Shown here: in pieces, positions 1 through 31,600 of the stretch | Layout of the letters: each line of letters begins with the position of its first letter | How positions within the stretch are numbered: the first letter of the stretch is position 1 | Assembly: GCA_900088475.1 (NCBI GenBank) | Contig: FLMG01004041.1 | Span: 1-33,155, forward strand | DNA length: 33,155 nucleotides | Direction: 5' to 3' | DNA from: Hyphochytrium catenoides | Taxonomy: Eukaryota; Protista; Hyphochytriomycota | Notes under the pieces: generated by a model | What the model saw: the letters and a program-made list of their open reading frames with translations, nothing else | Databases searched by the model: none | What the model was told of the DNA's origin: nothing | Position numbers and translations under genes: made by a program

Positions 1-1342
1 AGAGGGAACCTCCGGCTTACTTCCAGCGATCTCGTCAATCTCAGCCATGATCTCAGGCGTTAGCTTTGGCACGAAATCCAATGCCTTGATATTCTCATCC
101 AGCTGTGGGATCTTGGTTGCTCCCAGAATGACAGTGGAGACATTCTTGTTTGCCACGCACCAGGCAACAGCAAGCTGAGCTAAGCTGCACCCAATCTTAT
201 CGGCCACACCCTTCAAACGATCAGTGGTCTCCAGTCTCTTAGGATCCTTGAGCACAATGTCCTTTAACCACTTGTAGTCTGGAAGGTCTAAACGTGAGCC
301 CTCAGGAATGTTGCTGCCACTGTACTTGCCAGTTAAGACGCCAGACGCAAGAGGACTCCAGATGGTCAGTCCGTACTTATAGTCCTGAATCGGTTCTCAG
401 ATGAGCATGAGTCTTCAACGATCGTCGCCGATCAATAGATACTAACCTGGTAAAGTGGAAGGTACTCATACTCGACTCTCTTGCGCTCAAATATGTTATA
501 TTGCGGCTGATCCATGACCTGAGAAAAGGAAATAGCGATATGCGGCGGACAGATCAGTAAAGAGTTCTATCCTTCTAGGACCAAGAGAATCATCCATGAT
601 AAACAAGCTTGGTAAAGAGCCAATCACTTTTCTTGCAAGGGAAGAACCGATCGAAACTTACAGGACGGATAAGGTTCAGCTTGTCAGCTATTCTGCAGGC
701 CTCACTAATCTGTTGGGCACTCCACTCGCTCGTGCCCCAATAAAAAGCGAAGCCCTTTTCAATGACGTAGTTCATAGCCCGAACAGTCTCCTCAATAGGT
801 GTTTCTGCGTCAGGCCGGTGGCAGAAGATAAGGTCTACATAGTCCAGGCCCATTCGCCTGAGGGACGCCTTGGTGCCTTCAATAATATGCTTTCTGCTGA
901 GGCCAGCGCCATTGGGCCCGCCCAATGGACCCCAGAAAATTTTGGTGCTGAGAACCTTCAAGAGGTGCGGTCAGTTAAAAGCGGCAACTATTGTGTCTTA
1001 ACATATGCGCCTCGGCTTACCAGGTCTTCTCTGTGCCACTCCTTCCGTTCGATGCCCATCTTAACTACCTTTCCCATAATCTCCTCTGACTGACCCTTCG
1101 CGTAGGCTTCAGCATTGTCGAAGAAGTTAATCCCAGCTTTGTAGGCATGGAGCATAAGCTCGTAGGCCTGCAGAAGTAAGCCATGCAAAAGCACTTGAGA
1201 CGATCTAAACACGGACAGAACTGACCAATGATGCAGTCCACATTACCTTTTCAACATCAACTTGCGTGCCGAAGGTTACCCAGCTGCCGAACGACAGCTC
1301 AGAGACGAGAAGTCCACTGTTACCAAGGTGCCTGTACTTCAT
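1..1342 (-). CDS. Aldo-keto reductase, voltage-gated K+ channel beta-subunit-like (AKR6/KCNAB family); 3' end runs off the window
   Basis: Spliced translation: [25 protein letters not shown]...[14 protein letters not shown]...STKIFWG...[10 protein letters not shown]...DLIFCHRPD...YWGTSEWSA...QPQYN...[17 protein letters not shown]...QLAVAWC...TVILGATK. Four GT-AG introns at about 1168-1246, 956-1020, 519-661 and 386-446. Confidence 0.93.
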
Positions 1343-6432: not shown

Positions 6433-8560
6433 ATGGGCAACAGGCAGGGGAAGCCTGCCAGTAGGAAGGCAAAGGAGAGGAATGCCCGGGAGGAAGCGTT
6501 AGCAGGGCAGCAAAGAGGCCAGGCTCCGCCACGCCCTGCCCCTTCAAGGAGTCCACACCAGCATCCATCGTCGTCATCAGGTTCCTCGATGTCATCTCAG
6601 AACGCTAGTAGCGACCCACCCCCTCCTCCTGCAGGGCGACCGAAGAAGGCACCCGCAATGGAACCCATTCTCTGTACGCGCTGAAAGCTTTAGTCTAAGA
6701 ATGATTGGCTCTTCTGCTCACTGCCACTTTACCCCTCACCTCTTCCATTTTTAGCTGACGATGAGTCGGACCTTCCCGCTTTCACAGAGCAACTTGATGT
6801 CCGGGATGCCCCTAACGCGCAGAAGAAGGTGAGCATATGGCTCTTATTCTTTGTACTGCAGGCGGCTCAGCACTGACCTTACCCTTTCTATTAACGGATC
6901 TTAGATCAGCATAAATGACTTTCAACTGCTCAAGGTGCTGGGTAAAGGTAGCTTTGGCAAGGTACGCAAGAAACATAAGAAGCACAGGAAGAGAGAGCAC
7001 GTAGTAATGTTGATCATTCTTCCTCATCTAATGGAACTCCATGCCTGGTATCAGGTGATGCTGGTGAGAAAGAAGGACGATGGGGAAATCTACGCTATGA
7101 AAACGCTGCGGAAAGCGGCTCTTATCCGGAGAAACCAGCTGCTTCATACGCAGACAGAGCGGAACATCCTACAAAACATTCGCCATCCTTTTCTGGTCAA
7201 CCTGCAGGTGACGGTCCCCGCTACTCTTTACGTCTTCATCGTTTGCGTGATTGACGCTCACGTTCTTCACCCTCTCAGTACGCCTTCCAGACGCCGGATA
7301 AACTGTACATGGTGCTAGACTTCATGGGAGGAGGCGAGCTCTTCTTTTGGCTTAAGAAAGAGAGACGCTTCTCTCAAGCTAGGTGTGTTCGCTTCGCGTG
7401 TTGCCTTCTCCCTCCATTCTCCCTTTATTGCTCTTTACTCTGTTTCCCGCACCCTACGCTAACTTTGCACCGCAATAGGGCAAGGCTGTATGCTGCAGAA
7501 ATCCTGTTAGCCCTGGAAGAGCTACACTCGCATGACATCATATACCGCGACCTTAAGCCTGAAAACATTTTGCTGGACTTTGACGGACATCTAAAGCTCA
7601 CAGACTTTGGACTGAGCAAAGAGGCCGTGTCTGGGGCTGGTCCCAAAGGTAGCTTCCGTTGTAGAAAGTGAGGTCCATTCGTCAGCACTCAACCCCCTAT
7701 CCTTTAAAGGAGGAACCAAGACATTTTGCGGGACGCCAGAATATCTGGCGCCGGAGATTTTGGAGAACAAGGTAGTGAACCCTCTTCCCTTCCTGGCATA
7801 AGAGCTATGTAAGGATCTGACCGTCAGTTGTGCCACGGGTAGGGACATGGCAAGGCGGTAGACTGGTGGTCCCTAGGAACGTTGCTATATGAGATGATGA
7901 CAGGGCTGCCGCCGTTTTATGACCAGAACATGCAGCGAATGTATGACAAGATCCTCCACGCGCCGCTAAGGTACGAGCCGAGCTGATCGAGACTTTTTTC
8001 GGATTCTCTAGTAGATGAAACCTCAAGGGACTTATGCATCTTCTTCTTTCTCGCAGGTTTCCTACATATCTCTCTCCAGAGGCGAAGGATGTGTTAACGA
8101 AACTCTTACATCGAAAGATAGACGATAGGCTAGGCAGCGGCAAACGAGGAGGAGGAGACATCAAGGTTATCCTAGTTGGCATTTTTCTTCTGGGTACCTT
8201 AATGACCTCACCCTCCTTCTTTCACTTCCCCTCATGACTTGATATAGAGCCACGACTTCTTTAGGGTTCTCGACTTCACGAAAGTGTATAAAAAAGAATA
8301 TGAGCCAGATTTTAAGCCGCCACAGGGCAATGGTAAGCAGCAGACACATTATCCGGTTCTAGATCTCTTCTGGTTGATGTCACACCTAATGGTCATGATG
8401 TGTCGTAGGTCTTCTCGATGTACGGAACTTTGATAAAGAGTTTACTTCAGAGCGGCCGGAAGACTCTGTCGTCACTGGGCAGCTAACTGCTACACAGAAA
8501 GCCAAGGCAGAGTTCAAAGGCTTCACATTTGATGCGACTAATCTCCCGGACAGAAGTTAG
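6433..8560 (+). CDS. AGC family Ser/Thr kinase 1 (Akt/SGK/S6K-like, no PH domain, putative N-myristoylation)
   Basis: MGNRQGK start; [45 protein letters not shown]; AGC tail NFDKEFT and hydrophobic motif FKGFTF; 10 GT-AG introns. Confidence 0.95.
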
Positions 8561-8677: not shown

Positions 8678-11408
8678 CTATAGCCTCTGAGTGCTGACTC
8701 TGTTAGTTACGACCATGTGATTGCCGTCAATGTGTGTCGGCTTCTCTTTAGACGATTGCGCCTGAGTCCCAGACGAGCCGCCATTGAAGTTAACTCTACC
8801 GTTGACTACAAAGAGAGGGTTAGCCGAGCTCAGCACTGCTTCATTCACAGAGACGCCATCCAGATATTGCTTTAACAGCGATTGGAGCTGCTGGTTTTCT
8901 TGCGTCAGCCTATCCTTTTCTCTCTGCATTGCCAGCTGATCCAATAGTGCCTATGCAGAAATCCAAGGGATTTGGTGTTAGCTATAATGAACACGACGAG
9001 AGTAGCCTCCCATTGTACCTTGTTATGACGCTTCCAGAATCGGTCCAGGTAGTGCAGCATTTGCACTGGCTCTCCGGACTCTGTTACCCCTCGGGCCCGA
9101 AGCTCTTCACTCTTTTTATCGCTAGGCAGATGATCCTCTGTAGGCCCACGCAGCAGGAGATTGTGTGACTGTTGCTCCATGTCGTTGTCCAGTTTGCTCT
9201 CATCCTCAGCGGTGGATTCAAGAAAGGGTAGAACCTTCTCTCTCTCTGTCTCTTTCGCACGAGCTAGCTCTGCCATCTTTAGTATTCGCTCGGCCAATTC
9301 GACCTATAAATGTGTAAGCTTAGCCCAACCATTGAGATAACACCACGCGCAAACTTTTGCAGGGCCATCCATTGCCGCATAGGGAAGTACCTTGTCTTTC
9401 AGTGCTGCTTTGGTCTTTTGAGCAGAGATAGCCAGGTCTGTCAGACGCTTTTGTTGGTCCTCTCTGTACTTGTTCATGCTGTTTTTCAGATGATGATAGT
9501 GCCCAGCAATCACCTGCCCCAGAGTCGAACATGTTAGATGAAACTGGCTTCGACGGATCTGAGGAGAGGAGATGTATAGGACCAACCTCCTTCTCTTCGA
9601 CTAGGGCTTGGTTGCGTTGAGCACTTTCCTTGGTGTTCTGGCTGAGTTTGGTTCTCCAGTGGTTGATACTGGCTTGCAGTCTCTCAATCTTCCGCACCTT
9701 GATCTCAATCTCTTTAGATAGCTCCTAAGGATCGGGGGATATACCCGTGAGCTCCTTGGTCGGGCATGTTCACCACACACGGTTTGTAAGGCCCACGCCG
9801 GTTTCGCTTACCTGGTCTTTAGCAGTGAGATATTTAAAGTCCTGCGTCCGTTGGTCTGTCTTCTGCAGGTAGCTAAGATGCTCAGCCTCAAACTTCTGCT
9901 CCAGTTCCTCTATGGCGCTGGTAGGCAACAGTTAAGAACACGATAGAGACCACACAGTCGGTAAGATATGCGGTTCTATCAGCATTATCCTTATCAGCGC
10001 GGGTGCCGAACCTGTCGAGGGTTATCCGGAGTACGTTGATATCGTCTAAGTTCTTGTTCTTAATTTCCTCAGTGATCTGCTCGTGTTCCTGGAGAGCCTC
10101 GTTTTCCCTCTCTTTCTCTTCTTGTTCAATGGCCTCCAGAATGCCTGTTAAGCGATTGATATCCCAGGTGTGCTGAGGGGGGAAGGGGATCAGAGTTACG
10201 TTAGCTTCATTGCAGAGAATTAGAAACGCTGCGACCTAGTTGCACGGTACTTTAATAGGAGTTTTAGACGTCGGTCGTGTCAATGGAGAGGGAATGAAAG
10301 ACAGCGGCGGGAGGAACACGTCACCTGCTTGATGATCTGCTCTTTCTCTGCGTAGAACTCTTCTTCTAAAACACGAAGCTCTTTGTGGAACTCTGACTCG
10401 ATGCCCTTGATCCGCTCAGTCTGCAGTCGGAGAAGGCTATCCATGTTCTGGAGGTGGCTACGAAGGGCGATCTGGTATTGTTCCTGGAAAGAGAGCCAAG
10501 GCACGTCAGGACGCCTTCTCCGCTTCTATTTCACCTGGGACTCCTTCTTTCTCACTACTCTCTCTCTCTCTTTCTCTGTGTCGCTCTCTTCCTCCGGTCT
10601 CTCACTCATGTCATTATTTGTATCTGTGCACTTCCCTCTCGCTATTTGGTTGCCTGCTCACTGTCTTCCGCTCCCGGTTTCCTTCGACAATCTATTCCAC
10701 TGACCTCTGCCTCCGTCAGATCCCGGTCAAGCATCTGAATAATTGCGTCCTTCCTATCTGCATCACGCTCGTGGTTTTGACTGAGGATCTGCCCGTCATT
10801 TTCAAAAGGTAGCCAGGGCCGTAGCGTTACTATCTGTCTGTCCGACAAAAGAAGTTGTCGAAATAAAAAGAAGAGAGTACCTCGATGTCCTTCTTTAAGG
10901 TCTCGACTTTTGCTTGGCGCATGACTCTGCGCCACTGGTTCTGAATCTTCATCATGTTTATGCGGCTGTTGCGCTGCTCACTCTGCATATATTCCCGCAG
11001 ACGCTCCCTCTCGACCATCGCCAACCGGCGCTTCTGGTCTGCTTCTTCCTGGAGACGGATCTTCTCCTAGAGGCCGAGGACAAAGGAGAGAGAGTGCGGG
11101 GAGAAAGAGACCAAAGATGGACACGTAGTCGAGCGTCAGAACGGCGTCATGGCCTAAAGAAGAGAGAGTAGCAGCCAACTCACTTGCAATAAGAGCTCCT
11201 CTGGACTGAGCTTCTGCTCTTGTCCCTTCCCCTTGCCCTTCTTCTTTTTGGCACCGCCCCTAAGACGAAGAGGTACCGCGATGGTAGATGAGAGGCTTTC
11301 TCGATCCACCAGGAGGGGCCTCTCAAGTAGTCGCTCATCCATCTCATCGCCGAGGTCAGCGGAGACCATATCACGCCGCTGTCGCTCACCTCTGCGTCCC
11401 TGCGCCAT
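8678..11408 (-). CDS. DRC2: Dynein regulatory complex subunit 2 (CCDC65/DRC2) with an N-terminal leader ending in LRLRGG
   Basis: Coiled-coil protein with DRC2 motifs [26 protein letters not shown]|[28 protein letters not shown]|[32 protein letters not shown] and [19 protein letters not shown]. Nine GT-AG introns. The start Met is uncertain among three in-frame Mets at ~11408, ~11369 and ~11342. Confidence 0.9.
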
Positions 11409-11599
11409 GGTTTCCTTGGTTTACAGATGAGATAGCAGGCAACCTTCAGCACAGACGTCAGGCCGGAGATAAAGAGACTCTGAGATGCACCGCGTGCCTC
11501 TAGATGCTTCCCCTATCCTTCTCGCTCCTTCCTCTCATTGTCCAGGCTTCACCTACTGCCGCAACGTTGGTCTTTCTCTCCGCATTTATATTCTCCCCC

Positions 11600-11796
11600 T
11601 GCTCTCTCTCTTTTCTCTATTCTACTCCTCTCCCAGTCACTCTCCTCCCCCCNNNNNNNNNNNNNNNNNNNNNNNNNNNTCTCTCTCCCCCCCTCTCGCT
11701 CTCTCTCTCTCTCTCTCTCTCTGTCTGTCTGTCTGTCTGTCTATCTGTCTGTCTGTCTCTCTCGCTCTCTCTCTCGCTCTCTCTCTCGCTCTCTCT
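11600..11796. repeat. Compound microsatellite (CT)n/(CTGT)n/(CTCTCTCTCG)n spanning an assembly gap (Ns at 11653-11679)
   Basis: Directly visible simple repeats flanking 27 Ns. Confidence 0.95.
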
Positions 11797-12541
11797 ATGC
11801 CGGGCCCTAAGCCTTGCTATCAGTCTCTGTCGGGTTTCCATATCATCTCTCCTGCCTTTGAAGATTGCTTGCTTTTCTTCCTAGTTCTCTCCCTCCAAGG
11901 CCGTTACTAGCCCCATCCAGAACTACCCCAGGATCATGCCCGAATTTAGGCCATCATGACGAAAGTAACTCAGGTTCTCTCTTTGTTCTGCGAATCTTCC
12001 TGCCTGCCTTCCCTTGCTTCTTCAACCTTCAAGGTCCTCAGCTCACCCGCTGCGGGCCAGCGTGCGAGCGACAGGGACATGAGCTGCAGATAGACAGACC
12101 ATCCAGCACCACCAACAGCAAGCAAAGCAGCATCAGCACCATCACCACCAGTGGGAACACCTGCAGCGGCACCAACAGCAGCTAAACACCATCAGCAGCG
12201 CACCATCAGCTGCTCAAGGATAGCAGCGGCCAGCGGCGGTACCCTGAAAAAGAGCGGCTGCAGCGGTCTCTCTCTGTTCACTCCTCAGTGTTGAGGCACC
12301 TGAGTCCTGTAAGTGGGCCATCCTTTCTTGGTTCCTACTTTTGTTCTCTCACCCATGTGCGTGCGTGGTCCCCCATAAGCCAAAGCCTAACGCCAGCGCT
12401 ACTTCATCCCTCGCATGTATGCATCCCATCTCTCCTTGACTGAAGAAGTAATGAAGGGGAGAAAGCTTTAAGCCCTGTCAGGGCCTCCATCAGCGGGAAG
12501 CAGCATTTTTTGTAGGACCCCAGAAGGCCTCCTTAACGACG

Positions 12542-14220
12542 ATGGAGAAGCTTGAAGAGGACTCGAGCAAGCTCAAGAAGAAGCGCAAACAATTGAGCAC
12601 TGCCACCCTACAGCGCTTGGATGGACTGATCGATGCTGTGTCACGCTTCAAGCGAGCAAAGCTGGGAGGTAAGGAGTCTATGATATGCATGCATCACCGA
12701 TGCAGTTCCGACGAACCAACTCATGGCTTCTGTTACCTTCTTTCAGCAAACGCGCCATGGGGAACCACTACTGAGACCACAGAGCAACTCGAAAGCCTGT
12801 CTGCGGACACTCCCAGCGAGTTCAGCAACCTGATAAAGGGCTATAGGGCCAATGTCTCCAAGTTCACAAAGGCTACGGAGAAGGTCTCTATTGACTCCCT
12901 GTTCTCGGCTTCGGGAGTTCAATCGTCAGCACCTTACTCACGTTCTCTGCTTGTAGCTCCTGGCATCAGATGCAGATCGTGTCTTTCGAGGAGGCGGCCA
13001 CTTGTCCAAGCCGGCCATCACCCAGTGGATTCTGCAGCATTTGACCCAAGAAGGATATTTTGAGACGGCACAAAGACTTGCTGCGGTGGGTTCCTCTTTA
13101 GCAAAATCCACGAGGCTCGCAGGCATGGCTGTGGACTGACACGTAGGTTCTAGGAGACGGGCCAAGAGCCCTCCAATGAACTAATGGAAGAGCTCCAGCA
13201 CCTGTACCGGCTTATTGAAGATATTAGAGTCCGTAAGGATCTGCAACATGCTTTAAGGTAACCTATGTTCACTGTTGAAGATCCACGAGATCGCTGACTG
13301 GTCCTCTAGCTGGGCTCAAGGGCGAAGTAAAGAGCTCCAGCAAATTGGAAGTGATCTGGAATTTGCACTTCATCGGCTGGTGTTTCTTCAGATGGTCACG
13401 CGTGGACGGCCCGTGAAGGAAATCCTAGACTTTGCACAGAAGAGCCTGGGGAACTTCTCCGAAACTCACCTTCAAGGCACGAAAATACTATTACTACTTA
13501 TTGCACAGAATCATGCTTCTAAATTAGCAACCCACAGATATCCAGAAGCTCTTGTGCTGCGTGCTGTTCGTTAACCGGCTTGGAAGCTCCCCGTACGCCT
13601 CGTACACGCAGGAACAGCTATGGGAGGATGCGGAACACCTTCTTCTACGAGATGGCTGCGCTCTACTGAGCCTTCCTTATCCTTCCGCTATCTCCTCTTG
13701 GTAAGAGCTTATCGGCAGACTTCTTTGGTAGCTGATGAGCGGTAGAGGCTAAGGATTCTATCTAGCCTAGAGGCAGGAACCCTGGCCCTGCCAAAAGTGA
13801 CGAAGATGGTGAAAATCATGCCTCTAGAGCAGTGGAAAGCGCTGGATGAACTTCCGGTAAGAGTCTGACCGCAAGAGGTATCGACGTTTGCCCTCAATGC
13901 GGTTACTAAGTCAAGCGGTACTGTCACACACAGGTAGACGTCCCACTCCCTCAGCGCCTTCAGTTCCATAGCCTCTTCTCTTGTCCTGTCTCTAAGGAGC
14001 TCAGCACCCCAGCCAACCCTCCTGTGTTGCTCCGTTGTGGCCATGTCGTCTGTCGAAGCTGCGTCGATAGATTCTTGAAAAACTCCTCCAGGTGGGGTCT
14101 GATGATGAAGGGTAGGAGTGCCGTTTCTAGACATTGATCATTCCATGTTTGAACAGCTTCAAGTGTCCAACGTGCCCTGCAGAGCAAAGCGAGGAATATC
14201 TTCGCGAGATTTGTCTCTAG
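12542..14220 (+). CDS. RMND5: RMND5/Gid2 RING subunit of the CTLH/GID E3 ubiquitin ligase
   Basis: LisH/CTLH-like ILQHLTQEGYFETA, WAQ...SDLEFALHRLVFLQ, DIQKLL...SSPY, AGTLALP...ELP|VDV...FHSLFSCPVSKELSTPANPPVLLRCGHVVC...FKCPTCP degenerate RING. Eight introns including one GC-AG (13477-13537). Confidence 0.92.
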
Positions 14221-16919: not shown

Positions 16920-18576
16920 ACTCCGAAGCTGGGGCTCCCGGATCCAGGACGCCAGGAAACGCAAATGACGATCAGCGTCAGGCAGCTTTACCGGCGGCGG
17001 CGTCAAATAGTCGTGCACCTCCAGCTCCCCCGTCTTCCACCTCCTCCAGCTCGCGAGGTGTTGTCTCGGGAGGGCCTCGTTCGGGCCAACCTGCTAGCGT
17101 AGCGTCTGTAACGAATGCGCTTGATAAAGCCAAGCTCGATGACTCCGATTGTAAGCGCTATCTCACTTGACTCTATCGCTTTGAGGACTAATGAATCAAC
17201 ATAACTTTGTTACTCTTAGCTGACGACGAAGGTGAGGCTGGTGGCCCTGCCTTCAGAGCTGAGATTGATGTCAGTACGGCTCTGAAGCACGACCCCAAAA
17301 AGAAGATATCTATCGAGGACTTCGATCTTCTCAAGGTGCTGGGCCAGGGAAGTTTCGGCAAGGTCATGCTAGTCAGGAAAAAGGACACACAAGAAGTGTT
17401 TGCCATGAAGATCTTGAAGAAATCTACTCTTCTAAAGCGTAACCAGCTGCTTCATACTAAGACTGAGCGGTATATCCTTCAGAACATCCGGCATCCTTTC
17501 ATTGTAGCACTGCAGGTAAGTTCTTAAGTTTGTGGTGCAGCTGAAGGCTAGATCCCTACGCTAAGGCCGTATCTGTAGTATGCTTTTCAAACAGAGTCGA
17601 AGCTTTACATGGTTCTAGACTTTATGGGTGGCGGGGAGCTCTTCTTTTGGTTGAAGAAAGAGAGACGCTTCAAGCCAGACAGAGTGCGATTATGGTCCAT
17701 GGAGATCTTGCTAGCGCTAGAAGATCTTCATAGGCGAGACATAATATACAGAGACCTGAAACCTGAGAACATCTTGGTAGGGCTTGATGGACACATCAAG
17801 CTAACTGACTTTGGTCTGGCCAAGGAAGCTGTGACAGGCATAGGCCCAGCAGGTACGCAGCCGAGATCGTGGGTAGAACACAAAGACTTCTCTCACCCGT
17901 TCTTTCCCGCCCTCTTTGATTGCCTTAGGTGGTACAAAAACTTTTGCTGGAACACCGGAATACCTGGCGCCGGAGATTCTCCTCAACAAGGGCCACGGTA
18001 AGGCCGTAGATTGGTGGTCCTTGGGCACACTCATGTATGAGATGCTCGCGGGTCTTCCGCCCTTCTACGACAAAAATGTACAACGGATGTATCAGAAGAT
18101 TATGCATTCGGAACTTAAGTTCCCACCCTTTATGCCCCCAGAAGCTCAGGATTGCATTGGAAAGCTTCTGATTCGGCAGGTATGTAACCGTTTATGGTGA
18201 ACCAAGGTTTAACATATTTAGCTGATGGAATGCTTGCTAAGGTGGAAGAGAGGCTGGGAAGCAAAGGTGGTGGCACTGAAATCCAGACCCATCCATTCTT
18301 TGCTGTGCTGGACGTCAACAAGGTTTTGGCAAGGTTAGTGACTTCGCGACCTCCTTTAGTTTCCTACGTCGCACTCAACTAGTCCTTAGGGAGTATGATC
18401 CTGGATGGAAGCCCCCGCAGGATGATGTCATTGGCAATTTTGATACAGAGTTTACTACGATGCATGTGATGGATACCCCTGTGACAAGCTCTATGAGCGT
18501 AACGGGACAGGAGAAAGTTGCGCAAGCCCTACAGAACTTCACATACGATGGTAGCTCCATTGCACCAAGAGATTAG
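16920..18576 (+). CDS. AGC family Ser/Thr kinase 2 (paralogue of kinase 1); first exon and start codon not resolved
   Basis: [53 protein letters not shown]; five introns downstream of the TTTAG acceptor at 16919. Confidence 0.93.
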
Positions 18577-26120: not shown

Positions 26121-29100
26121 CTAGGCATCAAGGGTATTATGCAAGGATTCAATGAATCTGAAAATATCGTCCTTCGGGATGGTGATAACTGCCGTCTCAA
26201 ACCCCTCATTGACCGAGGGCGCGTCAATCTCCTCTGCTGCTAGTGCAAAGGCTATACCAAATTTACTGAAAAGAGGGGAGCATTAGTCAGTGGGCAATCA
26301 ATCAGGGTCTTCGGTGGCAAGTGCAAAGGCTGTATCAAGGATACTGAAAGCAGGAGAGCCTTACTCAGTGGCTCCAAGAACGAAAGGGAAAGGATAAGGG
26401 CCCAGCAGCGGCAACTCAAAGCACTTACTTCTTAACCACGTCACCGTAATTTTCTGGGCACATTGTTGCCACAGCTGTGTAGGCTCCAGTCTTTTCATTG
26501 AGGCTGAGAAGGACAAGTGGCAAAGCCTGCTTGCCTATCCAGCGTTTTGACTCCTTCAGACAGGAAGAAGTCAATGATGCTTCGCGCTATTGGAGAAGTG
26601 AAAAAAGCTACTTACCCTATGAACATCAATAAGAAAAAGTGCCAAAGAAGATAGAGTCGCAGGGTAGGAAAATATCCGCTCGTCTTCATCCGCCACAACC
26701 TACGCTCAGCTTAGTACACGAGTAGCGGACTGATGGTGACAACAAGCTGTATAATACCTGGAGGATGGCGTAGCGAAAGTGCTTTGCCCTGGTTATCGAT
26801 CGCTTTTCCATGATGCTCACAGCTTGTCGGACTACGGCCTGCTGAAGCCTCATACTTTCCTGGATACCGTCACCGAGTAAATCGGTATTTGTGTTCTTAC
26901 TGCAAGAGCGTTTTGAGAGAATCCAATGATGGTAACCAAGGGTATGTTTAGTTCAGTAGCGGGAGCCGGGAAAAGAAAGGATCCTGAAGTTCAAGCACAG
27001 CTGCCCAAACCTTGATGTGGCCGAGTACGCTAGGAACCATCGGTCCTTTGATGTGAACTGAGGGCCATCTGGAGCATCTGGGCCGTTCCCAGAATTAGCT
27101 CCATCTTCAGACGACGAATAGCGAGAAAGCAGCTTCGCAGAGGCGCGAAGCAGAGACGATAGTGCGTATGCCGCATCTGAAGCCGAGAGAGATTGCTTGA
27201 ACCCTAGGAACATTTGTACCCACGTTAGTCAAGTATCATGAAGCGGTGGAGTCCCTCCCCAAAATACTATCGACTTACCGTAGGTTCTTCTAAAGGAGCC
27301 GTAGAAGAGCTCGGTTAAACCATAAGCCTCACTGGCTTCAGACAGCTTCAACCGTAGCTTACTGCGAAGGTCACTACTCATGAAGGTAAACCTAGCAGGG
27401 AATCAGCGCCAGATGTCATACTTAATCAAGGGGAGAGAGCTGCTGTACTCACTTCTGTTGACATTCTCTTAGAGACAGACCCATTCTGGCTAGCATAGTC
27501 TCCAGCTTCGTTCGACCTACAATAAAGAGAGAGTGGGCAAGGGTAGTTGCGCCTTCAGGCGGTGAACAAAGGTCCATCTCACCTGCCGCTCTCCAAATCT
27601 CCAGTTTGGCGGCAACATAGTTGGAGTGATACATACTCTCATACAGTGACCAATGACGGTACAGCATCAAGCGGTATTCGAGCTCAAAGTGGAGTTTGCC
27701 ATTCTCAGCTGCACCGATTCGGGGTTATAAATGGAAAAAAACGCTTTAGCTGATCGGAGTGCTCACCTGTGGGTACCGAAGCCCCGTCCTCTAGGACAAA
27801 AGTAGCAGCAGAATCGCTGTTCTTGTGAATAACCTTGAGATAAGTTACGGAAATCAGTGATTGCTGGAATATTCCTTGCTATAGCTACTTGTACCTCTTG
27901 CTGCAAGACCTCGACGTGAGAGTTGTAGCTATCAGTGTCCATGTGCTGCGTAACGTAGTGACTTGTCAAGCCGACAATTGCCATCCAGAGATAGTTATTC
28001 GTGTCTCGGTTAAGCTGCTGTGAGAGCTCGTACATTAGACACGATGACGGACTTCCAAGAAAATTGCCACTATAATATTCTCGGATTTGTCTACGACGCT
28101 TTTTCCTGCGCATAGAATCGCAGCAAGGAGGTGAGTTCACTGTATGTCGGTCCCCGATGAGAGTTCTGAACTCACAGGGACGTGGTCTTGTCGCCGCGTC
28201 TTAGACGTCGACGTTTAACGCTTGGCTCTTCACCGTCTTCAGGTTCGAGGATGTCCTCTTCCTCACTGTCAAAACAAAGGGAATCAATGCAAACCGAGGC
28301 GCCATAGAGCAGAAGGAGTGATTGACTGTCGCTTTTTTTATGTAAAGAAGACAGCGACTCACCTCGCTTTATCTTTTACACGAGCTTCCGCTGGCAGACT
28401 CTCCCCACCACCGCCTACAGGTTTATCCACGCTATCCGTGTGTCTGGTGCTTCCTTCTGAAGTGCATGGTATTTCTGAGTACCTGCGGAATGCTGCAACC
28501 AGTAGTAAGGACAAACCTGCATCACCCTCGATATTAGTGCTTCTCTCATCCGTATTCCGCAAACCCATTTGGTTCTCTTGATCTTCGGGTCCATCGCTAG
28601 CTTCTTGTCCAGTTTCGTTGTCCCTGCTTCTGCTACGCTCAGGCTCAAATTCTTTCTCGCTACCATCCTCGTCGCTATCTTCAAGAGGATCACCCATTTC
28701 GACTCCTTTCTCATCTTCACTGTCAGACCCGGAACCATCGGCCTCATCGTCATCAGAGCCCATGAGGTTATCGTCTTCCGAGTCGTAGTCGCTTGGAATA
28801 TCTTTCCCAACCTTGAGGATGCCGTCATCTATAACTATGATCTTGGAGTGCAAGGTAAGTACGTGACGTGATAAGATTAGGGCCTGCGGGTGTTAGCATC
28901 CCAAACGGCTTACCTGTTTCTTATCATGGACATTGGCGAGGTGGACGGGGCGATGGCTGTCAATGACAAAGCAAAGCAGATCTTCTGGCAACCCAACAAA
29001 TTTTCTCAGGTCGATCATTGCTCCACAATTTACAAAGATTACACTCCGTAGCTCAAGGCTGGATTGCAACCTTTCCTCTACAGATGCTTTAAGTTCCTTA

Positions 29101-29340
29101 TAGTTGCAGACGGGAACTAATGAATAGCTTATCAGCTCTACACGGAACAGCGACTGTGCATGGGTTAGGGCGGTCAGTTGGGGTCGTCATAGGCTAAAGG
29201 TGTACCGTTAAAATTCTGCAGGCACAAAGGGAATCCGGATCGCCTGCAACAAGCAGAAGAACGGTTGTTCCTCCTGCAGCTGCATTTTTCCGAATACGGT
29301 CGAACGCCACTGAAAGCTGATCTCGCGGCCAAAGAACCAT
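26121..29340 (-). CDS. CDC45: Cell division control protein 45 (CMG helicase component)
   Basis: VLLLVAGDPDSLCACRILT|SLF, VIFVNCGAMIDL, VIDSHRPVHLANV, acidic insertion, LWMAIVGLT, LMLYRHWSLYESMYHS, LARMGLSL, SASDAAYAL, N|KFGIAF. Multi-intron. Confidence 0.95.
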
Positions 29341-30285
29341 GCTTTGGACAATGACAGAGGTCCCTGTGCGATGGGGACCGAACGTCGGTAGGCAGGAGCC
29401 AGGAGGGGCGAAGGGAAAGAGTAGATAAGCACGCCTGGAGGAGTAGTTCTTTACGGCGCCAGTTTCAGGGTCTTGACTGTTATCGGGAGAGCAGATCCGT
29501 CGACATACGAGTAGCTTGATTCTACACAAGCTCTATTGAGACTGCCCAGTTCCTGTTGAGCTCAGCTTCTCAACGAACAAGTAAGCATAAGCAGTCGTGG
29601 ATGAGACTCGAGCTCTGCCTGTCTTCTTCTTGGGGCTCCTGAAGTGCTAGCAGGCATGATAATGTGCAGACCTTGGCGCCAAAGGGCCTGCCAGTTCGTT
29701 TCATAGCACTGAACTCAAAAATACCGCGAAAGATGGAATGACCCTGTGACTGCTAACCGCTAGAGCCACGGTCAGTGAACAGCCAGAGGCCGTCATACGA
29801 GGTCGTCGTTGGCGTGTTTCGCCCTACAAAGTTAGGTCAGGCTTCCTACTACTGTCTGGGATCCCCTCAAACTTCCTTGTTGGGATCATTCATTGCATTG
29901 TCATTGTTGCGGTGTCATCATGAGTCTTGGATCGATAATCTCATCGTCATTTATTGGCTCTGAAGCCTCTGCTTGGTTGTACTTGTATTAGAATTACATT
30001 ATGAAGTCTCTGCTTTATTAGAATTACATTATAGCTCGCCGTGGAATGGAGTGCCTATTACTTGGCCTCTAGTCTGTTCTACCGATCTGTAGAACGCTTG
30101 GTACTACTATGCAGGGTTCCCTACTACCATTATTATTTGCTGGCGGCTGTTCATTCTTTCACATCTGCTGACCGTCTCCTCCTCCTCCTACCTCCTCCCC
30201 CTTTTCTTCTATCTCTCTGACCTTTCTCCTCTTCATAAGCTTTCTCCATATCTCCTTTTTTCGGTGTTAAGGGGTGATTTTTAAT

Positions 30286-30490
30286 GACTACTACTACTGA
30301 TAACTAAGAAGAAGCAAAAGGAAGGAAGAAGAAGAAAAGGAGGAGAAGAAGTCGAAGAAGGAGAAGGGGAAGAAGAAGAGGACGAAGGAGGAGGGGAAGA
30401 AGAAGAGGACGAAGGAGGAGGAGGGGAAGAAGAAGAGACGAAGGAGAGGAAGAAGAAGGAGAAGAAGAAGAAGAGAAGCGGAGACGAGAG
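30286..30490. repeat. Purine-rich (GAA/GGA)n low-complexity tract preceded by (CTA)n
   Basis: Visible imperfect GAAGAAGAAGAGGACGAAGGAGGA units. Confidence 0.9.
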
Positions 30491-31600
30491 CTACAAAGCC
30501 CTGGACTCTACAACGCGTTCTTCTCCTCGTCCCTCACCATCGATATCGGCAAAGGAAGAAGAAACATAGTTGAACTCTTCCGCAATAATAATGATAGGAG
30601 ATGGAGGAGGAGAAGAAGAGAAGGGCGTGGCGCCGAGACCATCATCATCATCGCGCTCAATCATGCAAGAAGCTAAGGCGTCCAATAATAATTGCTGAAC
30701 AGAAATACGCTTTAGGATCATCTGAATTGCAGCCTCTTCATGGATGGCGAAAGAGGTTCTGGTATGGAGAGTCAGAGTCTTTGCCAACCGAGGCCAATGA
30801 CCAAGAGGACGGGAAGCCTCAAGAGCGGCACGATCATACTGAAGCTTGACCAGCTGTTGCACAGGCTCCAGGACATGTGGCAAAGCACCACCAAAGGACG
30901 CCTAGACGAGCGGCACAAATAGTAGCCCCACAGCCTGCTGGCCAGGGACCCTCATATAACCTCACCTTCGCTTTGTAACAGGACGCCTCCCGAGACTGTC
31001 TCACGCTTTCTCAGACAACCGACCTTGATAGCCCGCATGGACTGCTGCATAAGGAAGGGTTCTGGATTGCAGCGAATCCGTGACGGACACATCAAAGGCC
31101 GAGTACTGATAGAAAGGTGAAAATCCACGAACCAACAAATCGCTAGTAGGCTTCGGATTGGAGCCCGCGGAGGTGGCGAGATTCGCGGGAGACTCTGAGA
31201 CCAGAATTCCGAAAGGCATGAAAGAGAAGTTCTGGACGCGGCGGTGACGCTAATGAGCGCCACCGCCACGACGACAGACTGTGCCATGATCGCCAACAAA
31301 GGCATCCATTGGACGGGAACAAGAAGGCAGGGGGCTGGTGGGTGGAGTGCAGAAAAGAGGGATACCTAAAAATAGCCACAGCTTCAGTCGGAACACCAAC
31401 GCAGCAGAAGAGATCTTCAGTTGCAACCAGGGAATAGAAGCAGCCCGAAGGAAAGCCCCTACGTGTGGGAGGGAAGTAGCCCGCAAGCGAGCTTGAGCGC
31501 AAGTCTAGGCCAGCAGAAGACAGGAGAGCTTTGGAAGAAGCCGTCATCACCCACAAAGCGGGACAGTTACCGTTGCAGATGCACCTGAGCCAAAAGATCA
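30491..31600 (-). mobile_element. Degenerate 3' portion of a CRE-like non-LTR retrotransposon (zinc knuckle plus restriction-like endonuclease)
   Basis: Broken minus-strand frames give, in order: LRATSLPHVGAFLRAASIPWLQLKI...LGIPL, CSRPMDAFVGDHGTVCRRGGGAH*RH, PTSDLLVRGF...AFDVSVTDSL and VGLLFVPLV*ASFGG. This matches my recollection of the motif order in CRE-clade ORF C-termini. Stops and frameshifts are present, no introns. Boundaries approximate. Confidence 0.75.

Follow-up and report, generated by a model that had tools for sequence, protein, structure and literature searches.

A putative remnant of a ubiquitin-like protein, ending in LRLRGG, at the start of the axonemal protein DRC2 in Hyphochytrium catenoides

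Background

Natural fusion precursors of ubiquitin or of ubiquitin-like (UBL) proteins are, to our knowledge, few: polyubiquitin, eL40, eS31, FUBI-eS30, SDE2 and a few others confined to particular lineages. All of these have been informative on co-translational processing and on the specificity of deubiquitinases (DUBs). DRC2 (CCDC65) is a core coiled-coil subunit of the N-DRC, the nexin-dynein regulatory complex of the axoneme. A DRC2 gene is present on the reverse strand of the stretch of DNA analysed here, a contig of 33,155 nucleotides from Hyphochytrium catenoides (FLMG01004041.1 of assembly GCA_900088475.1, positions 1 to 33,155, hereafter the window), and its first exon encodes a 52-residue leader that ends in PLRLRGG. 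The best overall explanation, held here with moderate confidence, is that this leader is an eroded UBL fusion whose Gly-Gly tail still directs its removal from DRC2.

In the precursors Ub-eS31 (RPS27A) and Ub-eL40 (UBA52), ubiquitin ending in LRLRGG is in frame with a lysine-rich cargo, and a DUB cleaves after the GG. In the split-ubiquitin reporters of Johnsson and Varshavsky, a C-terminal ubiquitin fragment (Cub) is cut from its cargo after the GG by cellular UBPs only once the ubiquitin fold has been completed. The FUBI-eS30 precursor is cut by USP36 (PMC8354635). SDE2, which has the arrangement UBL-GG^K (^ marks a junction throughout), is cut by USP5, and mutations of the GG or at the equivalents of ubiquitin L70 and R73 abolish its cleavage (PMC13572447).

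The DRC2 fusions described here are like Ub-eS31 and Ub-eL40 in having an N-terminal ubiquitin-type module with a GG, directly followed by the N-terminus of the cargo. They are unlike them in their cargo, a coiled-coil protein of the axoneme instead of a ribosomal protein, in their module, which in most lineages is a diverged UBL and not ubiquitin proper, and in a distribution that is patchy rather than universal. In addition, the leaders of the window and of the oomycetes are without the beta-grasp fold and appear to have the beta5 strand and tail only. SDE2 and FUBI-eS30 also have a divergent UBL with a diglycine ahead of the cargo, and for those two removal by a USP is known; in both, however, a folded UBL is present, and in the window there is none. 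Of the features of this class of UBL-GG precursor, the window has the diglycine and the start of the cargo, but not the folded UBL upstream of them. A destabilising Lys is exposed in SDE2, whereas the residue after the GG is Ala here, as in unfused DRC2 after removal of Met. The Cub reporters likewise have a C-terminal ubiquitin fragment fused to cargo, but these are engineered and carry true ubiquitin residues 35-76, while the window leader has ~13 ubiquitin-like residues and no known partner fragment. What appears to be new is an axonemal scaffold as the cargo and a tail-only derivative that keeps about 10-13 ubiquitin-like residues.

Results and Discussion

The leader and its LRLRGG tail

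The leader is followed directly by 23 lysine-rich DRC2 residues, after which exon 1 ends at a splice donor. Translation of 11408-11184 confirms the original prediction that LRLRGG is encoded in exon 1 at 11253-11270 (codons at 11270-11253 on the minus strand), behind a leader of up to 52 residues. The absence of Met between the GG and the DRC2-like region, which had also been pointed out, was found to be correct. Methionines are present in the leader only at positions 1, 14 and 23 and the next is residue 92, within conserved DRC2 sequence. With no ATG from the GG to this conserved sequence, the leader must be translated. In DRC2s of solved structure, 22-27 residues lie ahead of the equivalent of exon 2, which agrees with the 23 residues that follow the GG; the 52 residues of the leader are therefore extra. 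The segment after the GG aligns with A-x-LGK-x-VKG...EELLLQEK of homologues. Codon usage in exon 1 scores +5.2 bits in frame 0, compared to -8.7 and -49.2 in the other frames.

A UBL profile was built from the leaders of 46 full UBL-DRC2 proteins and run on the six frames of the window (1563 segments). The single segment matched was exon 1 (E 0.003, profile positions 71-93). The match is limited to leader residues 40-52 and the junction, with residues 40-52 at profile positions 71-83 (gstvevllrlrGG). This segment of the leader scores 14.3 bits, which was reached by none of 500 shuffles; for residues 1-40 the score is -1.2 bits, a value attained by 441 of 500 shuffles. The earlier view that the leader ahead of the LRLRGG does not resemble ubiquitin therefore stands for residues 1-40, but does not stand for the last ~13 residues. 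It is very probable, from the profile match and from the homologues described below, that the leader is an eroded UBL-DRC2 fusion and that these last ~13 residues derive from the C-terminus of a UBL. A Pfam search of exon 1 gave no match at E<=1, so there is no ubiquitin domain (PF00240) of ~70 residues, and no homologue of the window leader came up when exon 1 was used in a word-indexed search. The best match of exon 2 among representative proteins is a 62-residue fragment, P0001, from GCA_006365055.1, at 68% identity.

When all six frames of the window are translated, LRLRGG is present a single time, with 0.023 occurrences expected from composition; the expectation in a protein with the composition of DRC2 is 7e-5. 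These values, and the presence of a UBL tail at the homologous position in more than 90 orthologues, make it extremely improbable that the hexapeptide LRLRGG arose by chance in an N-terminal extension of low complexity containing Arg, Leu and Gly, even though the motif was picked out after scanning and typical amino-acid frequencies give an estimate of about one such hexapeptide for a proteome that runs to a few million residues. The likeness of the lysine-rich residues after the GG to the Ub-eS31 junction, AKKRKK, to which the original prediction had drawn attention, is probably coincidental, since this stretch appears to be an ordinary DRC2 N-terminus.

UBL fusions to DRC2 in other protists

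When exon 2 was searched with HMMER against 1.84 billion representative proteins, 97 DRC2-like proteins were identified, in many of which the conserved region is shifted by ~75-110 residues. The extra N-termini are roughly 70-90 residues, start with MQ(I/L)(F/L)V and end in R-L-R-G-G, R-V-F-G-G, R-M-R-G-G and similar sequences. Directly after these UBL leaders is A-(Q/L)-L-G-K-x-V-K-G-R. A search with full-length P0052 found fused members in the pelagophytes Chrysophaeum, Pelagophyceae CCMP2097 and Aureococcus, in the brown algae Ectocarpus and Undaria, and in Tribonema, Chrysoparadoxa and Incisomonas. The leaders of five of the named members score 50-80 bits against the Pfam ubiquitin family (PF00240). 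That of P0137, with 80 bits, is very close to ubiquitin. There are thus dozens of orthologues with a complete UBL ending in GG at the exact position of the window motif, which strongly supports the suggestion, made originally as an alternative, that the motif is the relic of an eroded fusion.

In a third search the UBL-DRC2 arrangement was also found among cryptophyte-like DRC2s, which are 82-90% identical to those of Hanusia phi (P0222) and to MMETSP sequences. Most of these cryptophyte-like proteins are unfused (MPKKGGKK...) and a few carry a PF00240 UBL, ending ...LLGLRGG^AKKGGKK in P0058 and P0064 and ...LRIRGG^MPKKGKK in P0217. The last of these keeps an initiator Met after the GG and has the look of a ubiquitin-like unit captured in frame not long ago; because of this, the fusion to DRC2 may have arisen more than once. 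The distribution of UBL-DRC2 is wide but patchy, covering stramenopiles and some cryptophyte-like sequences. Literature searches found no paper on the fusion of ubiquitin or a UBL to DRC2/CCDC65, an absence that is no proof. Public annotation describes the oomycete proteins as DRC2, 'Sperm tail' or hypothetical only, with the tail unmentioned.

Eroded leaders in the oomycetes and in P0110

Oomycete DRC2s were sampled as ~34 clusters from some 10 genera. All have a leader of only 13-45 residues, which ends in (F/L)H(L/V)S(L/R)K(L/V)xGG. In Phytophthora the leader is MPRRKSLRNNPRREHELPALFH(L/V)SLKLRGG^AQLGK, in Saprolegnia MVRVLHLSLKLQGG^AQLGK, in Achlya, where it has 13 residues, MRVFHVSSKVRGG^AQLGK and in Lagenidium ...VVEIALRLRGG^AQLGK. 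The C-terminal stretch of ubiquitin is LHLVLRLRGG. By comparison, the segment that survives in the oomycetes, for example FHLSLKLRGG^AQLGK, is recognisable as ubiquitin beta5 and the tail. An alignment of orthologues had been proposed at the outset as a check on whether the motif is kept while the leader diverges. Across the oomycete orders the GG is invariant and the alternating hydrophobic strand and (K/R)-(L/V)-x-G-G are kept, while the parts of the leader upstream of these differ.

In the S. parasitica and P. infestans genomes the reading frame runs without a break, a stop codon is 9-12 codons 5' of the ATG, and the UBL profile gave no other match within 4 kb at the DRC2 loci of these two species. 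The short oomycete leaders are therefore real, rather than the product of truncated gene models. The DRC2s of P. infestans (PITG_10796) and S. parasitica (SPRG_10611) are like that of the window in being ~55% identical to it and in having a short non-UBL leader, a beta5-like strand, (K/R)-(L/V)-x-G-G, Ala and a lysine-rich N-terminus. The window protein differs in its longer leader, in its LRLRGG, the exact tail of ubiquitin, and in the residues that follow the GG, which in the oomycetes are AQLGKAVKG.

In a maximum-likelihood tree, the window DRC2 groups with P0159, which has a full UBL, and with the oomycetes (support 97/92). The tree favours the arrangement (window,(P0159, oomycetes)), and the approximately unbiased (AU) test does not reject a clade of the window and oomycetes (p = 0.10). 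It is therefore not established that the window and the oomycetes underwent erosion independently. A third eroded leader, that of P0110, ends exactly in LRLRGG and is nested among full-UBL ochrophyte sequences (support 98/99); no UBL signal was found in the upstream frame of P0110.

Two further observations were made on the oomycete sequences. The extreme N-terminus of the leader, MPRRKSLRNNP, has no ubiquitin likeness and is conserved in the DRC2s of Phytophthora, Lagenidium and other Peronosporaleans (P0177-P0215, P0136, P0140 and P0145). The gene directly downstream of DRC2 in P. infestans (DS028137.1, L009; 5707-7650) encodes PX and DUSP domains, the latter being typical of ubiquitin-specific proteases.

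The glycine junction

Where the leader is at least 60 residues long (n = 54 sequences), position -2 is Gly throughout, position -1 is Gly in 44, Ser in 7 and Ala in 3, and position +1 is Ala in 53. A second set was made up of all fetched homologues in which the N-terminal motif of DRC2, xx[LMFVI]GKxxKG, is present (n = 123). The motif is preceded by GG in 82 of these, by GS or GA in 11, all of which have a full UBL, and by Met in 29; one has just a second upstream Met. An N-terminal extension without a glycine junction (G-G/S/A) was found in none of the 123 motif-bearing homologues.

The position of the junction is that of the initiator Met in the 29 unfused homologues. This is especially evident in pairs of fused and unfused twins, such as P0137 (...LRLMGG^AQLGKTVKG) and P0209 (M^AQLGKTVKG), the latter on a transcript-like contig with a stop in frame upstream of this sequence, and likewise P0110 (...MLRLRGG^AKIKKAMKGG) and P0301 (M^AKIKKAMKGG). 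Since the twins break exactly at the junction, the UBL module takes the precise place of the initiator Met. By analogy, this placement is the arrangement of the ubiquitin-ribosomal protein precursors and is what a removable leader predicts. No other feature of the leaders is as well conserved as the glycine junction. The junction rule and the repeated twins are two independent lines of evidence that make a functional role fairly likely.

Several points weigh against removal of the leader at the window junction. In about 12% of the fused sequences, those with an extension, the GG is replaced by GS or GA, which suggests that the UBL is left on DRC2 in some lineages. Entire full-UBL clades have LLGS (P0154, P0156, P0170, P0184, P0198 from Incisomonas, and P0212) or (P/K/T)GA (P0106, P0113 and P0133) at the junction, and by analogy with mutants of ubiquitin G76, these UBLs may stay in place. 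The predicted mature N-terminus in the window is without the usual x-LGK-x-VKG motif after GG^A and is lysine-rich instead; similar lysine-rich variants follow the junction in P0058 (AKKGGKK), P0110 (AKIKKAMKGG) and P0288 (AKKKGGG). The window DRC2 is also on a long branch (0.99), and because of this and the missing motif, relaxed constraint on the window protein is possible. Finally, DUBs generally bind the globular body of ubiquitin (PMC8024992, PMC13572447), therefore a leader with no fold would be a poor conventional substrate. For USP1 or USP12 to cut the minimal peptide LRGG-AMC, the enzymes have to be activated by cofactors (PMC8024992).

This normal requirement for the fold is one reason to consider that the UBL relic is no longer cleaved, with beta5 and the tail kept as a permanent extension of DRC2 that acts as an N-DRC binding strand or as a stability or sorting signal. 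The GS and GA junctions, which indicate that uncleaved UBL-DRC2 is probably tolerated, would be in keeping with such a permanent extension, as would the conservation of MPRRKSLRNNP in the Peronosporales, a hint of a role beyond discard. It is nevertheless considered unlikely. Every one of the ~40 short-leader sequences has GG and then Ala, never GS or GA, no homologue has an extension that lacks the glycine junction, and the match of the junction to the Met of unfused orthologues, to the residue, fits a removable leader rather than a structural strand.

Proposed processing of the leader

For the favoured explanation, an eroded UBL fusion whose tail still directs leader removal, the following steps can be proposed. 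Sequence comparison shows the UBL fold to be eroded in the window, as in the sampled oomycetes, with the last beta-strand and LRLRGG left behind an unrelated stretch of 39 residues. The leader would be translated from the ATG at 11408, and a deubiquitinase-type cysteine protease that recognises the ubiquitin tail would then cut after Gly52. The product would be a DRC2 starting at Ala53, with an N-terminus as in unfused orthologues after Met removal, and the cleavage reading thus predicts Ala-initiated DRC2 in axonemes. The use of the tail as a maturation signal, which the original prediction had put first, has indirect support, namely the invariant GG^Ala of the short-leader orthologues and its placement at the initiator Met of unfused DRC2. 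For the window organism itself, the chances that the leader is removed by cleavage at GG^A are put at about even.

The purpose of such a leader is open to speculation. It might make a long coiled-coil protein easier to synthesise or more soluble, in the way that eS31 and eL40 are helped by ubiquitin, or alternatively it might mask the N-terminus until assembly. Once freed, the lysine-rich N-terminus could settle at the top of the N-DRC linker, where the extended N-terminus of DRC2 contacts DRC8 in Tetrahymena (PMC10504270). That masking and unmasking of the DRC2 N-terminus matters for assembly is speculation.

It is possible, though somewhat doubtful, that a fold-less ubiquitin tail acts as a natural processing signal in the window organism, in the oomycetes and in at least one ochrophyte-like lineage (P0110), being cut by a DUB-type protease that has no need of the beta-grasp body or for which the body is completed in trans, as in split ubiquitin. 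If true, the leader would be the first DUB substrate in nature to have no fold, and its removal would be a step of maturation that is specific to a protein of the axoneme. The tail-only leaders may be a natural experiment on the smallest part of ubiquitin with which a processing protease can manage. If cleavage holds across the stramenopiles, a ciliary structural protein would be a new class of cargo for fusion precursors, in a group that includes oomycete pathogens of plants and fish, the zoospores of which depend on flagella.

The DRC2 gene model

Exons were located by tblastn with the full-length homologues P0052, P0016 and P0097 and the junctions were then inspected (Table 1). The model has 10 exons, with GT-AG junctions throughout, and an open reading frame of 1740 nt that encodes 579 residues. 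Oomycete DRC2 is the most similar to the product, and residues 40-575 are collinear with it at 53-56% identity. Exon 2 matches DRC2 chains from solved axonemes (7ju4_2, 8tek_B, 8j07_2 and 9fqr_Qu; E 5e-7 to 7e-5), among them residues 24-88 of Chlamydomonas 7ju4_2 (E 5e-7), Tetrahymena 8tek_B and human 8j07_2. By itself, exon 2 reaches 32.9 bits for the Pfam family NYD-SP28 (PF14772), above the cut-off of 22.1. The match to NYD-SP28_assoc (PF14775) is weak, at 15 bits for exon 10 alone against a cut-off of 27; the exon 10 region aligns well with homologues. The junction of exons 1 and 2 is supported because EELLLQEKIR, which spans it, is uninterrupted in the homologue P0131. On the basis of these similarities, the window gene is identified as a bona fide DRC2.

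The leader would be an artefact if one or more UBL exons were hidden in an assembly gap or unrecognised upstream, or if the leader region were untranslated. The run of N upstream of the gene, being of uncertain true size, could hide an upstream exon, which counts against an eroded leader, and some of the metagenome-derived short leaders in the databases may be truncated models. Even so, an artefact of the gene model or assembly is improbable. The lack of an ATG between the GG and conserved DRC2 is joined by a TAA in frame at 11423-11421, four codons 5' of the exon 1 ATG, and codon usage in the leader favours frame 0. Leader residues 1-40 have no UBL signal, and an acceptor there would lack the pyrimidine tract of the other acceptors of the gene. 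The oomycete genomes, in addition, have the same architecture in uninterrupted reading frames. Elsewhere in the six frames of the window, including the interval 5' of DRC2, the profile of 46 leaders found no UBL-like frame.

Splicing through the motif was also considered. Use of a GCAGAG^GTGAGC donor near the ATG with the acceptor-like CTT-AGG codons would put exon 2 out of frame, and no in-frame upstream donor for the acceptor-like CTTAG in the LRLRGG codons was found by reading the sequence.

Table 1. Positions of the DRC2 exons, leader segments and other features in the window.
Feature	Position	Strand	Notes
DRC2 exon 1	11184..11408	-	75 codons, no stop; ATG 11408-11406; GTGAGT donor after 11184
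DRC2 exons 2-5	11066-10881, 10788-10705, 10483-10325, 10172-10012	-	tblastn and GT-AG junctions
DRC2 exons 6-10	9917-9812, 9724-9587, 9513-9391, 9303-9019, 8950-8678 (with stop)	-	tblastn and GT-AG junctions
Leader residues 1-39	11292..11408	-	basic/acidic stretch, no ubiquitin likeness detected
Leader residues 40-52	11253..11291	-	probable remnant of ubiquitin strand beta5 and LRLRGG tail; putative cleavage site after 11253
Predicted mature DRC2 N-terminus	11184..11252	-	Ala53 onward, Lys/Gly-rich, then SPEELLLQ
Assembly gap, 27 N	11653..11679	.	GA/GACA microsatellites around; 245 bp upstream of ATG
Microsatellites	11690-11830		GA, GACA and GAGC; flank the 27-N gap upstream of DRC2
Intergenic interval, 1133 bp	11409..12541	.	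DRC2 ATG to ATG 12542 of divergent CTLH-domain gene; no UBL-like frame
CTLH/CRA-domain gene	12542-14100	+	divergent from DRC2; PF10607, E 7e-10; RMND5/MAEA-like
AGC-type Ser/Thr protein kinase gene	6905-7668	+	one of two paralogues, ~10 kb apart
AGC-type Ser/Thr protein kinase gene	17195-18573	+	second paralogue
CDC45 gene	27766-29500	-	PF02724, E 6e-22; long acidic Asp/Glu/Ser exon
Aldo/keto reductase gene	1-970	-	PF00248; runs off window start
Purine-rich repeat	30308-30500		~30.3-30.5 kb; would translate to poly-Arg/Gly/Glu

Neighbouring genes

The gene divergent from DRC2 encodes a protein like RMND5/MAEA, a type of subunit of the GID/CTLH ubiquitin ligase. A homologue of this gene (tblastn E 7e-11) adjoins a full UBL-DRC2 gene on L003, a metagenome contig, where the relative orientation of the two genes is reversed; the adjacency could be a conserved linkage or a coincidence. 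The near-collinear exons and shared peptides of the two AGC-type kinase genes suggest that the pair arose by local duplication.

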